This document shows, in pieces, positions 539 to 31,962 of a stretch of 41,556 nt of DNA. Position 1 is the first letter of the stretch. Every line of letters starts with the position of its first letter. Both the position numbers and the translations under genes were made by a program. Under the pieces are notes generated by a model. That model did no database searches and had not been told where the DNA came from. It was given only the letters and a program-made list of their open reading frames with translations. Source of the DNA: Octopus bimaculoides. Lineage: Eukaryota. The stretch is from positions 89,156,155 to 89,197,710 of the forward strand of contig NC_068981.1 of the NCBI RefSeq assembly GCF_001194135.2, written 5' to 3'.

Positions 539-744
539 ATGGTATATGCTGGATGGATATGGGCTGTACTGCACCTGGTCATCTTGCAGCAGATTGCATC
601 AGTCCTTGGATGTTGGTGGCAATTTGAACCGGGAATGACTTGGCAATGGCAGTTGACTAGTCCGCTGGATCTTACTTATGAAGTAGAGATGTATGATGTA
701 GATCTATACGACACGTATAAACCGCAGTTCGACTACCTCAAAAA
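539..744 (+). CDS. GH114 coding exon 1: signal peptide plus N-terminal motif ([68 protein letters not shown])
   Basis: 3' part of ORF 467..748. Acceptor TTTCTTCAG/CAG at 528/531, AAAATGG start context at 539, donor AA|GTAAGT at 745. WQWQL and YDVDLYD match the GH114 N-terminus as I recall it. Confidence 0.92.
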
Positions 745-31084: not shown

Positions 31085-31962
31085 TTTTAGGTAAGCATAT
31101 GTTTTCCAGTTCCATCAGACAACAGCAAACGATCTCCATCCTCTGCGATCTTCTGCAAGAGATTTGGCATCGTCTCAGCTCAACCTCTCTGCAAATAGAT
31201 CCTTCAGAACTGTCCGCTTCCATGTTATCAGTAGTCGTCCACGTTTCCTCCCCCCCCTTCAGGCTTCCAATCGTGGGAGGGTTTTGGCTGTTTTGTGGAT
31301 GGCATTCTAAAGACATGACCAAGAAACTTCAGACGGCGCTCTTTCACTGTGATGCATAGTATTTTATGTTTAGTTCTCCCGTAGATTTCTTCATTGGTTA
31401 TTCTGACTTGCCAAGAGATGTTAAGAACTTTGCGGAAGAACCTTTGGTGTAAACATCTAGCTTCTGGACGATTCCTAACGTCATCTTCCACGGTCCACTG
31501 GCGTAGATGGCAATCGGGATGACCAAAGAATTATACAAAAGTGTCTTGCTTCTTAGAATCATCTGATTAGATTGTCACGTGTTTCTGAGTCTCCTAAAGA
31601 TAGAACCTGCTTTTCCAGTTTTGCTCAGTACGTATTGCACTGTGTCATCCCTGTTGGAAATGCTGCTGCGCAAGTATGTGAATCTCTTAACCTCATCTAC
31701 ACGTGTATTATTTTCTCTTGTATCTTGATAGGATTTTCTTCTTCCACTGACATGACTTTCGTCTTTTCTCAGCTGTATTTGTATGTATATTAATAAATTT
31801 GTTTTTATTCTATTTCAGGCTGTATTTCATGTGGAGTATGTTCGTAACCGATCACGTGGGAAGCGCGTCAAGCAAACGGTGTGCAAACGCATTACAAAAG
31901 GCTTCAGTACTCTAATCAAGCTTCGCAGGTTGAACGCTTGGAGATTGTCGTGTGATTCATAG
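539..31962 (+). CDS. Spliced gene for a secreted GH114 glycoside hydrolase (endo-alpha-1,4-galactosaminidase-like), 264 aa; CDS = join(539-744, 5985-6280, 11598-11746, 31819-31962)
   Basis: Manual splicing: 206+296+149+144 = 795 nt = 264 codons + TAG. All three introns are GT-AG with matching phases (AA|G = Lys69, G|AG = Glu168, phase 0 before Ala218). No internal stops. GH114 motifs appear in the expected order across the exons. Confidence 0.93.
831..960 (+). mobile_element. SINE family A, old 5' (tRNA-like head) fragment
   Basis: GGAGTATGGCTGAATTG...GGGTTCGATCC...CATCTTGGGCA aligns by eye to the head of the 17761 copy. Confidence 0.55.
955..2000 (-). mobile_element. Degenerate non-LTR retrotransposon ORF2 fragment (CR1/L2-like RT region)
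   Basis: Minus-strand translations give [21 protein letters not shown] and [19 protein letters not shown]...[19 protein letters not shown] (decayed SGVPQGSVLGP). Broken by stops, frameshifts and a deletion. Confidence 0.8.
2352..2545. repeat. (GT/GC)n compound microsatellite
   Basis: Direct reading. Confidence 0.97.
2763..2950 (+). mobile_element. SINE family A, 5' half ending in a (TA)n tract
   Basis: GTGACTGTGTGG...CCGGGTTCAGTCTCAC...CACCTTGGGCAAGTG...GACGGAAACTGAAG matches the 17761, 34175 and 38873 copies. Confidence 0.75.
3535..3770 (+). mobile_element. SINE family A, 3' half
   Basis: CGCTTGACAACC...CCTGGGGTCAATTT...AGCATGGTCGCGGTCAAATGACTGAAAC. Confidence 0.7.
3996..4422 (+). mobile_element. 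SINE family C: younger copy (4022-4221) nested in or adjacent to an older copy
   Basis: Two passes through GAGTTCAAATTCCGCCGAGGTCGACTTT..CCTTTCATCCTTTCGG; AGAACCGTTA is duplicated at 4012-4021 and 4222-4231. Confidence 0.8.
4480..4909 (-). mobile_element. SINE family A, old near-full-length copy
   Basis: Reverse complement of the family A tail (GACTGCGGCCATGC) and head (ATCACATAGCCA) with an internal CA tract. Confidence 0.65.
4910..5120 (+). mobile_element. SINE family C, degenerate copy
   Basis: TTTCATCCTTTCGGAGTCGATAAAAGAAGTACGAGTTGAACACT...AATTGCTGGCCTTGTGCCAAAATGTGAA. Confidence 0.65.
5306..5684 (-). mobile_element. SINE family B (tRNA-like head, (AAC)n tail), copy 1, 12-bp TSD
   Basis: Near-identical to 16431, 20141 and 36490. 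A box TGGCCCAGTGG and B box GGTTTCGATTCC on the minus strand. TSD AGATTTTAATAT (5293) / AGATTTGAATAT (5685). Confidence 0.88.
5720..5932 (+). mobile_element. SINE family C copy ending about 50 nt before the exon 2 acceptor
   Basis: AGCTGGCAGAATCG...GAGTTCAAATTCC..CGAGGTCGAC...AAGTACCAGTT...GCCTTGTGCCAAAA. Confidence 0.75.
5985..6280 (+). CDS. GH114 coding exon 2 ([98 protein letters not shown])
   Basis: Acceptor TTTCTTTTCAG ending at 5984, donor G|GTAAGT at 6281. Open frame with highly typical GH114 motifs, including EPDN. Confidence 0.95.
6960..7096. repeat. (TA)n-(AG)n-[10 N]-(GT)n compound microsatellite
   Basis: Direct reading. Confidence 0.95.
8380..8530 (+). mobile_element. SINE family C, degenerate internal fragment
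   Basis: ACGTTCTGACTTCAAATT...GGAGTCGATAAAGAATATCA. Confidence 0.45.
9090..9270. repeat. (AGGC)n/(AGGT)n tetranucleotide array
   Basis: Direct reading. Confidence 0.97.
10485..11035 (-). mobile_element. Three head-to-tail SINE family C copies (about 10485-10602, 10625-10832, 10850-11035)
   Basis: Three occurrences of GATGAA(A/G)GGCA...GGxxGAATTTGAA(C/T)TCA, the reverse complement of the family C core. Confidence 0.75.
11598..11746 (+). CDS. GH114 coding exon 3 ([50 protein letters not shown])
   Basis: Acceptor CTTACACTTCAG ending at 11597, donor AAG|GTAAGT at 11747. Overlaps the start of ORF 11696..12061. Contains IGLKND and ESC..Y.EC. Confidence 0.95.
11790..12215. repeat. (TACA/TGCA)n, (CA)n, (CT)n compound array at the start of intron 3
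   Basis: Direct reading. Confidence 0.97.
12606..12660 (+). mobile_element. Terminus of a hAT (Charlie-like) MITE
   Basis: CAGTGGTTCCCAACC directly after CCCTAGAG, close to the Charlie-type NTCTAGAN target. Partner TIR not seen; an assembly gap follows. Confidence 0.45.
16431..16813 (-). mobile_element. SINE family B copy 2, 12-bp TSD
   Basis: Same body as 5306. TSD GCCAGAAATGAT (16420) / GCCAGAAGTGAT (16814). Confidence 0.88.
16910..17312 (-). mobile_element. SINE family A, full-length copy
   Basis: ACTTGTTTCAGTCATT..GCGGCCATGCTGG ... GACACTTGCCCAAGGTGCC..AGTGGGACTGAACCC.GAACCATGTGG ... TACAGCCA. Confidence 0.85.
17761..18180 (+). mobile_element. SINE family A, full-length young copy
   Basis: A box TGGCTGTGTGAT, B box GGTTCAGTCCC, internal (TA/GT)n tract, tail of GTAAAAGA repeats. 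Confidence 0.88.
18665..18853 (-). mobile_element. SINE family A, 5' half (3' half probably in the adjacent gap)
   Basis: Reverse complement of the 17761-17940 head. Confidence 0.85.
18880..19105 (+). mobile_element. SINE family A, 3' half (interrupted by poly-T and a 10-N gap)
   Basis: CATCGCTTGACAA ... TCGATTTGTTCGACTAAA ... CAGCATGGCAGCAGTCC. Confidence 0.6.
19150..19620 (-). mobile_element. Degenerate R4/Dong-like (restriction-like endonuclease) LINE fragment
   Basis: Minus-strand frames give [29 protein letters not shown] and [18 protein letters not shown], the CCHC-knuckle region typical of this clade. Confidence 0.65.
20141..20529 (-). mobile_element. SINE family B copy 3, perfect 12-bp TSD
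   Basis: TSD AGTGATTATAAT at 20128-20139 and 20531-20542. Confidence 0.9.
20870..21075. repeat. (CTG)n-(CTA)n-(CAA)n trinucleotide array
   Basis: Direct reading. Confidence 0.98.
21886..21992. repeat. (CCT)n-(TCT)n array
   Basis: Direct reading. Confidence 0.98.
21993..22305 (+). mobile_element. SINE family D: partial tRNA-like head, unique body, (TTA)n tail
   Basis: CTCACGATCGCGAGAATGTGGTTTCAATTCCCGGACCAGG resembles the family B B-box region; ends in (TTA)n. Only one copy in the window. Confidence 0.5.
22325..23640 (-). mobile_element. 5'-truncated R4/Dong-like RLE non-LTR retrotransposon (pseudogenised)
   Basis: Minus-strand peptides [39 protein letters not shown]...[10 protein letters not shown] and [20 protein letters not shown]...LQKIYLLG...IRKVL. 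Flanked by AAT-type microsatellites on both sides. Confidence 0.82.
23699..25185. mobile_element. Cluster of about 7 SINE family C units (mostly +, one - at about 24115-24318) separated by (ATT)n-type tails
   Basis: Heads GGTGAGCTGGC(A/G)GA at about 23699, 24013, 24358, 24579, 24793 and 25016, most followed by GAGTTCAAATTCC...AAGTACCAG. Confidence 0.82.
26122..26186. repeat. (ATCT)n array
   Basis: Direct reading. Confidence 0.97.
27454..27666 (+). mobile_element. SINE family A, 3' half (5' half probably in the gap)
   Basis: Near-identical to 17980-18160 and 34370-34560. Confidence 0.85.
27670..29349 (-). mobile_element. pogo-like (Tc1/mariner superfamily, DDE_1-type) DNA transposon remnant
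   Basis: ORF 28586..29017 has [29 protein letters not shown]...PKIHFPKLL (decayed LP.NSTH.LQPLDV motif). ORF 28059..28586 is an acidic linker plus C-terminal region. TIR-like TACCGTGAGGCGGGGTAAATGTGCAC at 29349-29324; weaker partner near 27671-27695. Confidence 0.7.
28059..29017 (-). pseudogene. Frameshifted pogo-like transposase, C-terminal part
   Basis: Two abutting minus-strand ORFs (143 and 175 aa) sharing position 28586; the N-terminal HTH and most of the DDE domain are absent or decayed. Confidence 0.7.
29368..29530 (+). mobile_element. Probable Tc1-type terminal inverted repeat (single end)
   Basis: TA|CAGTTTTGGCCAAAAGT resembles Tc1-family termini. No partner end found. Confidence 0.45.
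29595..29708. repeat. (GT)n microsatellite
   Basis: Direct reading. Confidence 0.97.
31090..31775 (-). mobile_element. RTE-clade LINE 3' fragment, antisense to the host gene
   Basis: Minus-strand peptides [30 protein letters not shown] and [23 protein letters not shown]...[12 protein letters not shown]...WKPEG. Confidence 0.85.
31819..31962 (+). CDS. GH114 terminal coding exon 4 ([47 protein letters not shown])
   Basis: Acceptor TTCTATTTCAG ending at 31818. Phase 0 matches exon 3. VFHVEY, C, GFSTLIK and W..C fit the GH114 C-terminus. TAG at 31960-31962. Confidence 0.9.
   Translation, partial: AVFHVEYVRNRSRGKRVKQTVCKRITKGFSTLIKLRRLNAWRLSCDS

Follow-up and report, generated by a model that had tools for sequence, protein, structure and literature searches.

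A four-exon glycoside hydrolase family 114 gene in Octopus bimaculoides, probably captured from a bacterium in the mollusc stem lineage

The GH114 gene and its exon-intron structure

The window, a 41,556-nucleotide (nt) stretch of the Octopus bimaculoides genome (contig NC_068981.1, positions 89,156,155 to 89,197,710 of the forward strand), matches chromosome CM046601.1 base for base (GCA_001194135.2, approximately 89.156-89.198 Mb, on a chromosome of 199.9 Mb) and contains most of LOC106879613, a gene encoding a protein of glycoside hydrolase family 114 (GH114). Joining of the segments 539-744, 5985-6280, 11598-11746 and 31819-31962 gives 795 nt, which encode 264 codons and a TAG stop with no internal stop codon. 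An exact-search spliced alignment of the 264-residue protein to the window returned a single solution with exons of 206, 296, 149 and 144 nt and introns of 5240, 5317 and 20,072 nt, confirming the four exons, three GT-AG introns and 264-residue open reading frame (ORF) proposed in the initial annotation. The donors of introns 1 to 3 read AAA/GTAAGT, TTG/GTAAGT and AAG/GTAAGT, and the corresponding acceptors are pyrimidine-rich and end in TTTTCAG, CTTCAG and TTTCAG. Intronless contigs with untranslated regions (UTRs) from two probable related cephalopods (SRR30931882 and SRR24189497) span all three junction positions.

The 264-residue product is identical to RefSeq XP_014784755.1, "uncharacterized protein LOC106879613 isoform X3", which is one of several isoforms listed by RefSeq for this locus. 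Isoforms X1 and X2, of 272 and 271 residues, have their start codon in a 14-nt coding exon located 7.25 kb upstream of the window, and a NAGNAG acceptor (cag/cag) at 529/532 accounts for the single residue that separates them (MSPVLRFKM against MSPVLFKM). The ORF given by the earlier join stands, but position 539, which had been taken as an exon boundary, is the ATG of X3, and the exon itself begins at the 529/532 acceptor. No other gene calls are present within 10 kb on either side of LOC106879613. A scan for bacterial promoters and terminators 3' of the stop codon was uninformative, the gene being eukaryotic.

All runs of N in the gene are intronic (introns 1, 2 and 3 contain 0, 10 and 3354 N, respectively), and no gap interrupts an exon or the reading frame. 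The gaps at 26532-27453 and 30673-31047, which are absent from the supplied gap list, also lie in intron 3, and the length of this intron is only nominal because of the gaps inside it. The orthologue from Argonauta hians lies on a stretch without any N and has exons of 206, 296, 149 and 144 nt, as in the octopus. No coding exons are hidden in the gaps, since the four exons cover Pfam positions 1-231, the gap-free exons of A. hians match, and the intronless cephalopod contigs align end to end. The features of the locus are collected in Table 1.

Table 1. Features of the GH114 locus and of its interspersed repeats, in window coordinates.
Feature	Position	Strand	Description
First GH114 exon in the window	529..744	+	Exon 2 of X1/X2; X3 coding sequence from ATG 539; ends in phase 2 in codon 69
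Predicted signal peptide	539..610	+	Residues 1-24, followed by C; hydrophobic core; V at -3, G at -1; cleavage site predicted from hydropathy
Intron 1	745..5984	+	5240 nt, GT-AG, phase 2, gap-free; SINE-like copies at 2751-2950, 4000-4420, 5004-5119, 5303-5684 and 5763-5883
Exon, 296 nt	5985..6280	+	Beta-strands 3-4; loop Trp105 (6091-6093); predicted catalytic nucleophile Asp140 (6196-6198, IEPDN motif)
Intron 2	6281..11597	+	5317 nt, GT-AG, phase 1; one 10-N gap at 7047-7056
Exon, 149 nt	11598..11746	+	Predicted catalytic acid/base Glu198 (11687-11689); equal length in chiton, limpet, oyster and Argonauta
Intron 3	11747..31818	+	Nominally 20,072 nt, GT-AG, phase 0; 3354 N in seven gaps; copies of SINEs; microsatellites; two unassigned ORFs at 28059-29017 (-)
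Last coding exon, 144 nt including TAG	31819..31962	+	Beta-strands 7-8; octopod-type basic C-terminal part; equal length in all mollusc classes examined
Probable 3' UTR	31963..32399	+	AATAAA motifs at 32178 and 32394 (motif positions only)
SINE family A, reference copy	16428..16813	-	About 390 nt, copies 92-97% identical; tRNA-like head TGGCCCAGTGGTTAGGG ... GGTTTCGATTCCC on the minus strand
SINE family A, other copies	5303-5684, 20138-20530, 36489-36824		
SINE family B, reference copy	34175..34580	+	About 410 nt; tRNA-like head GGCTGTGTGGTAAG ... GGTTCCGGGTTCAGTTCC
SINE family B, other copies	2751-2950, 16908-17308 (-), 17753-18181, 18665-18865 (-), 27454-27672, 38873-39275		
SINE, short interspersed nuclear element.

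Family assignment and catalytic residues

The GH114 assignment made in the initial annotation was borne out by a Pfam profile search, in which the octopus protein matched PF03537 (Glyco_hydro_114) over all of profile positions 1-231 of 231 (E = 5.5e-82; 274.9 bits against a cut-off of 27). Ega3 from Aspergillus fumigatus (6oj1/6ojb) was the best match in a sequence search of the PDB (2.4e-60), followed by GH114 from F. solani (1e-22), whereas the GH191 entry 9ep5 reached only E = 0.0027 and the NCBIfam model TIGR01370, of TM1410/GH191 type, scored 18.5 bits against a cut-off of 181. An AlphaFold2 model built from 98 homologues has a mean predicted local distance difference test score of 95.6 and shows eight strand-helix units arranged as a (beta/alpha)8 barrel. 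In a Foldseek comparison of the model with the PDB, Ega3 (6oj1) ranked first, with template modelling (TM) scores of 0.84/0.88 and a root-mean-square deviation of 1.9 Å, and was followed by 9ep6 and then by GH191 and the PelA hydrolase. The latter families, GH191, GH166 (the PelA hydrolase domain) and GH135 (Sph3), resemble the octopus protein in possessing a related barrel and Asp/Glu catalytic arrangement and act on polymers of alpha-1,4-linked galactosamine (GalN) or N-acetylgalactosamine (GalNAc). However, they match the octopus protein much more weakly, at 11-18% identity and TM scores of approximately 0.70-0.75, and it does not belong to any of them.

The catalytic residues of Ega3, the nucleophile Asp189 and the acid/base Glu247, have been experimentally verified, and Trp154 forms the tip of a mobile loop (PMC12054363). 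These three residues align with Asp140, Glu198 and Trp105 of the octopus protein, and all three positions fall on the expected residue types, which confirms the numbering offset. Neither Asp140 nor Glu198 varies among 14 mollusc sequences or the 98 homologues, and six cysteines are likewise invariant; Trp105 is present in at least 90% of the sequences, and the octopus protein retains all 36 residues that are invariant across the 98 homologues. The protein has three N-X-S/T sequons and, apart from the barrel, a hydrophobic N-terminal helix (residues 3-22) for which hydropathy and the model make cleavage after VLG plausible. On its sequence and model, the octopus protein is a single-domain GH114 protein with a predicted signal peptide for secretion and an intact catalytic apparatus.

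Distribution in molluscs and conservation of introns

The database searches list the best 120-150 matches, among which the scores of held-out sequences from Dreissena, Batillaria and Pomacea do not exceed those of the best bacteria. Among the matches listed in two large searches, the only named animals are molluscs: the octopods O. sinensis, O. vulgaris and Argonauta; the chiton Liolophura, with two copies; the gastropods Lottia, Patella, Gigantopelta, Littorina and Pomacea; and the bivalves Crassostrea, Mytilus and Pinctada. Searching cluster representatives at 50% identity added Dreissena and Batillaria, and again no non-mollusc animal was present among the matches listed. Two transcript contigs that are 65-69% identical to the octopus protein join the octopods in a clade with 100% support and are probably from other cephalopods.

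Exact exon mapping places introns at alignment columns 70, 169 and 219, in phases 2, 1 and 0, in Octopus, Lottia, Crassostrea virginica and Liolophura. In every species mapped, exon 3 measures 149 nt and exon 4 measures 144 nt. That three introns were gained independently at matching sites, and in matching phases, in four classes is not credible, and the three-intron GH114 gene therefore predates the radiation of crown molluscs, having been present in the ancestor of chitons and conchiferans. Some local variation was also observed. An extra phase-2 intron at alignment column 118 splits the 296-nt exon of the oyster into 144 and 152 nt, C. virginica possesses two adjoining GH114 genes in opposite orientation (L002, 1-2033 on the minus strand and 3001-8777 on the plus strand), and Batillaria has a GH114 pair with consecutive locus tags (BaRGS_00000131/132) on one contig.

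The ratio of nonsynonymous to synonymous divergence (dN/dS) between Octopus and Argonauta is 0.04 (dN 0.074, dS 1.86), which is approximate because dS is near saturation but is far below 1, and the ratio between the two other cephalopod transcripts is 0.10. Deeper pairs are saturated at dS and have a proportion of nonsynonymous differences (pN) of 0.22-0.38. Given that dN/dS is far below 1, the GH114 gene is functional and under strong purifying selection.

Relationship to bacterial and other eukaryotic GH114

Among the matches listed, the closest non-mollusc sequences are bacterial, with 50-56% identity across the domain. The best matches in the GTDB genome set belong mainly to Myxococcota (Enhygromyxa salina, Nannocystaceae, Kofleriaceae, Polyangiaceae and metagenome-assembled genomes labelled 'Myxococcales'), and also to Chloroflexota, Gammaproteobacteria and others. 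The Myxococcota proteins annotated as 'endo alpha-1,4 polygalactosaminidase' in E. salina, Nannocystaceae and Kofleriaceae share the invariant residues and the six cysteines with the octopus protein, but the bacterial genes are intronless, lie in operon-like contexts, often encode longer N-termini or extra domains, and have strongly acidic domains with a median net charge of -29. The founding member of GH114 is the enzyme of Pseudomonas sp. 881. The top profile match (P0130) was considered as an animal sequence and rejected, as it sits on a dense prokaryote-like contig, and two neighbours of the molluscs in the tree (P0146 and P0084) lie on dense bacterial gene arrays.

Eukaryotes other than molluscs that possess GH114 include Plasmodiophora, Diplonema, the labyrinthulomycete Hondaea, a chytrid, a foraminiferan, Phytophthora boehmeriae and the ichthyosporean Abeoforma whisleri. 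Protist GH114 proteins often contain several GH114 domains (Plasmodiophora has five, Diplonema three and Abeoforma two), and the copies from ichthyosporeans are fusions with PAN or EGF domains. As a group, these proteins stand apart from the type shared by bacteria and molluscs. The nearest relatives of Abeoforma GH114 are from Hondaea and Diplonema. A search with Abeoforma GH114 retrieved the ichthyosporeans Pirum and Sphaeroforma, anaerobic fungi and bacteria, and none of its 102 matches was from an animal or choanoflagellate. By these sequence comparisons, mollusc GH114 is not specifically related to the holozoan GH114 of ichthyosporeans. Single-domain GH114 of bacterial type was observed in the transcriptome of the foraminiferan Nonionella stella (P0299) and in P. 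boehmeriae (P0301), with bacteria nearest to each; these copies may represent further independent transfers or, for the transcriptome, contamination. A gene-transfer study has placed GH114 among the families convergently shared by osmotrophic eukaryotes (PMC13345962).

Phylogenetic trees were built by neighbour joining (NJ) on Kimura distances only. In the first NJ tree, the long-branched cephalopods form a clade with 100% support that lies outside a clade of chiton, gastropod and bivalve sequences (78%) and groups with metagenome proteins at 30%. A better alignment gave a single mollusc clade with an NJ bootstrap of 17%. A bacterial transfer is favoured because the only animals among the listed matches are molluscs, the nearest relatives of the mollusc sequences are bacterial, and the ichthyosporean type is distant. 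We infer, with fair confidence though short of proof, that the gene is best explained by one transfer into the stem lineage of molluscs, with a bacterium as the donor. The initial annotation had proposed that the gene either was acquired horizontally and then gained introns or was kept patchily since an early ancestor; the former is favoured here and the latter is disfavoured, but the trees give little support for a donor or even for a single mollusc clade.

Vertical inheritance, in which an early opisthokont or holozoan GH114 was kept only in molluscs among animals and lost elsewhere, is unlikely. Such retention would fit the presence of GH114 in fungi and in the ichthyosporeans Abeoforma, Pirum and Sphaeroforma and the lack of resolution in the tree backbones, and other animals could have been missed among the best 120-150 matches. 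However, Kimura distances from Octopus and Lottia to the nearest bacteria (0.64 and 0.59, respectively) are smaller than those from the same molluscs to Ega3 (0.89-1.02) or Abeoforma (1.15-1.33), and Abeoforma domains score 177-199 bits against the mollusc profile compared with 309-392 bits for bacteria. The ichthyosporean-type query retrieved no animal or choanoflagellate among its 102 matches. Vertical inheritance would also require independent losses in every other animal phylum.

It is similarly improbable, and slightly more so, that the donor was a eukaryote carrying bacterial-type GH114, such as an oomycete, foraminiferan, fungus or alga. The oomycete and foraminiferan copies lie at distances of 0.82-0.96 from the molluscs, further than the nearest bacteria, and their own nearest neighbours are bacterial, although the single-domain proteins of P. 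boehmeriae and N. stella reach approximately 301 bits on the mollusc profile and Ega3 is 41-43% identical to the octopus protein. A separate acquisition of the cephalopod copy would accord with the first NJ tree, in which cephalopods stand apart from other molluscs and group weakly with metagenome proteins, and with the equal similarity of cephalopod proteins to bacterial and other mollusc proteins. This second transfer is effectively refuted by the three introns that share columns and phases across cephalopod, gastropod, bivalve and chiton and by the equal lengths of exons 3 and 4, and the better alignment also gives one mollusc clade, albeit weakly; it is thus very improbable. Finally, despite the many N gaps in the window and the bacterial-looking protein, an artefact (bacterial contamination, mis-assembly over gaps or a decaying pseudogene) is rejected as next to impossible, as had been stated for contamination in the initial annotation, given the canonical introns, the host SINEs, the chromosome-scale context, the identical structures in other octopods including the gap-free Argonauta, the orthologues in O. 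sinensis and O. vulgaris, the exons untouched by gaps and the low dN/dS.

Charge reversal in octopods

The GH114 domains of 154 non-mollusc homologues are all strongly acidic, with a median net charge of -29, and that of Ega3 has a net charge of -15. The domains of non-cephalopod molluscs are only mildly acidic (-4 to -14), and values of -2 and -8 were obtained for the two other cephalopod sequences, whereas the three octopods are basic, with net charges of +4 to +6 and isoelectric points (pI) of 8.6-8.9. Net charge was preferred over pI, for which Biopython has a floor of 4.05. Octopods keep fourteen core acidic residues, have lost the acidic residue in 9 of 32 acidic columns and have gained approximately 19 Lys or Arg residues.

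Several of the octopod charge changes lie in strand-to-helix loops on the catalytic face, as judged from the secondary structure of the model. They include residues 103/104, which adjoin Trp105; residue 199, directly after Glu198, where 92% of bacteria have Glu and all cephalopods have Ser; residues 202/204 and 226; and residues 253/254, where a near-universal Trp-Asp is replaced by Arg-Arg or Arg-Asn in cephalopods. The negative cleft of GH114 is thought to hold the cationic substrate (PMC12054363), and for this reason the pattern of charge suggests that cephalopods, and above all octopods, may have shifted either in substrate, towards more acetylated or non-cationic polymers, or in targeting, towards anionic surfaces.

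Repeat content of the introns

Two interspersed families of approximately 390 and 410 nt possess tRNA-like RNA polymerase III heads, which were recognised by eye, and a third family is shorter. Together, the repeat families make up at least 16% of the non-N intron bases, and microsatellites constitute much of the remainder. Host SINEs are thus present in the introns as the initial annotation had described, but the introns being "filled" with them was an overstatement. Scans of the window for tRNAs and against Rfam gave no calls.

The window begins in an (ATT)n tract and has repeat-rich spots at 1-100, 300-460 and 11800-12200. Microsatellites of (AC)n, (TA)n or (CATA)n flank nearly every assembly gap and probably caused the gaps. 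Two abutting ORFs of 175 and 143 residues on the minus strand of intron 3 (28059-29017) have no Pfam match and may represent a decayed transposon gene; a Pfam search of five intronic or downstream ORFs gave no match. Intron 2 measures 18.9 kb in A. hians compared with 5.3 kb in O. bimaculoides, whereas introns 1 and 3 are similar in size, and intron expansion therefore continued independently within octopods.

Discussion

The explanation that best accounts for the data as a whole, and that is considered likely, is the capture of GH114 by a stem mollusc, probably from a bacterium, with vertical inheritance since, retention of endo-alpha-1,4-galactosaminidase activity and a shift of charge in octopods. 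One GH114 gene would have entered the mollusc stem lineage from a donor that was most likely a bacterium, the closest living relatives being mainly marine or soil Myxococcota. The captured gene would then have acquired three introns and a eukaryotic signal peptide before crown molluscs radiated. Its descent would have been vertical from that point on, with local duplicates arising in oysters and Batillaria and a further intron in oyster. In octopods, the introns appear to have been inflated by SINEs and microsatellites to a locus of approximately 39 kb, and the charge of the domain was reversed, partly in loops adjoining the catalytic residues, so that substrate preference or targeting has probably shifted.

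Several observations weigh against this explanation. Monophyly of all molluscs receives an NJ bootstrap of only 5-17% and fails in one analysis; no sister group is supported (NJ bootstrap of at most 0.1), so that the trees favour no particular donor; and no residues shared by all molluscs yet rare in bacteria were found at the thresholds used. Divergent molluscs rank no higher than bacteria among the best 120-150 matches, so that a divergent copy in another animal phylum could be missed, and GH114 is present in Ichthyosporea, which are relatives of animals. With regard to function, the loss of the acidic charge of the family in octopods weakens a simple carry-over of the substrate specificity of Ega3, and enzyme activity is known for no animal GH114.

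Enzymes of family GH114 act as retaining endo-hydrolases on stretches of alpha-1,4-linked galactosamine; Ega3 favours deacetylated regions of fungal galactosaminogalactan, and related bacterial enzymes cut the Pel polysaccharide (PMC12054363). The octopus protein shares with Ega3 a Pfam family, a (beta/alpha)8 fold, the catalytic Asp and Glu, the loop Trp and the cysteines. Unlike the octopus protein, which is a stand-alone, predicted secreted protein of an animal, Ega3 is fungal, is described as membrane-bound and is part of the galactosaminogalactan biosynthesis system (PMC12054363), and its electronegative cleft also differs from the basic domain of octopods. Chemistry of the Ega3 type is most likely because the fold and the catalytic and loop residues are shared, and the octopus enzyme is predicted to be a retaining endo-alpha-1,4-galactosaminidase in which Asp140 would attack C1 and Glu198 would protonate the leaving group. 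The substrate would be an extracellular, cationic microbial exopolysaccharide rich in GalN or GalNAc, such as a Pel-like bacterial matrix or fungal galactosaminogalactan, and the role of the enzyme in the animal would be the digestion of, or defence against, microbial biofilm. We know of no GalN or GalNAc polymer made by molluscs, and a microbial exopolysaccharide from food or from a fouling or infecting biofilm is for this reason the most likely substrate.

It is conceivable, if somewhat doubtful, that a bacterial transfer more than 500 Myr old gave a biofilm-grazing ancestor of all molluscs a secreted anti-biofilm or digestive GH114, active on the cationic GalN/GalNAc matrix polysaccharides (Pel-like or galactosaminogalactan-like) of microbial biofilms, that was kept across the phylum, and that octopods re-tooled it by reversing the charge of the active-site face for another substrate or for a lysozyme-like affinity for anionic microbial surfaces. 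If true, the mollusc enzyme would bring animals into GH114 for the first time and would represent a new class of animal anti-biofilm effector.

The gene is already present in databases, as 'uncharacterized' in RefSeq and as 'GH114 TIM-barrel domain-containing protein' in UniProt, and full-text literature searches returned no paper on mollusc or animal GH114 or on these locus names. The papers covered by these searches place the family in bacteria, fungi and algae only, and a 2024 paper reports GH114 outside brown algae in chlorophytes, fungi and bacteria. Glycoside hydrolases acquired by animals through horizontal gene transfer, such as GH45 cellulases, GH32 fructan hydrolases and GH13 amylases, are likewise secreted enzymes of microbial type that reside in animal genomes, have gained introns and are under selection (PMC11311677, PMC6509783, PMC7003070). 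In contrast to these enzymes, the presumed substrate of mollusc GH114 is a cationic polysaccharide of microbial matrices and not a plant cell wall or storage sugar, and its transfer would be older than the crown group of the phylum, with three introns conserved since. The enzyme family and the horizontal transfer of glycoside hydrolases into animals are both known, and what is unusual here is the phylum-wide age of the gene, its fully conserved introns and the charge reversal in octopods. The transcriptome pipeline for Berghia drops all transcripts with an alien index above 45 (PMC10795318), and contamination filters of this type may remove bacterial-like host genes such as GH114.

GH114 enzymes are studied as tools against the Pel biofilms of Pseudomonas and the galactosaminogalactan biofilms of Aspergillus, and a conserved, phylum-wide mollusc GH114 would extend the range of the family to animals. 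It would constitute a datable and very old transfer from a bacterium to an animal, with three introns frozen since before the mollusc radiation, and the charge reversal in octopods would serve as a natural experiment in the evolution of substrate electrostatics. For molluscs themselves, the gene would hint at an unexplored handling of microbial films on food, skin, gills and eggs.

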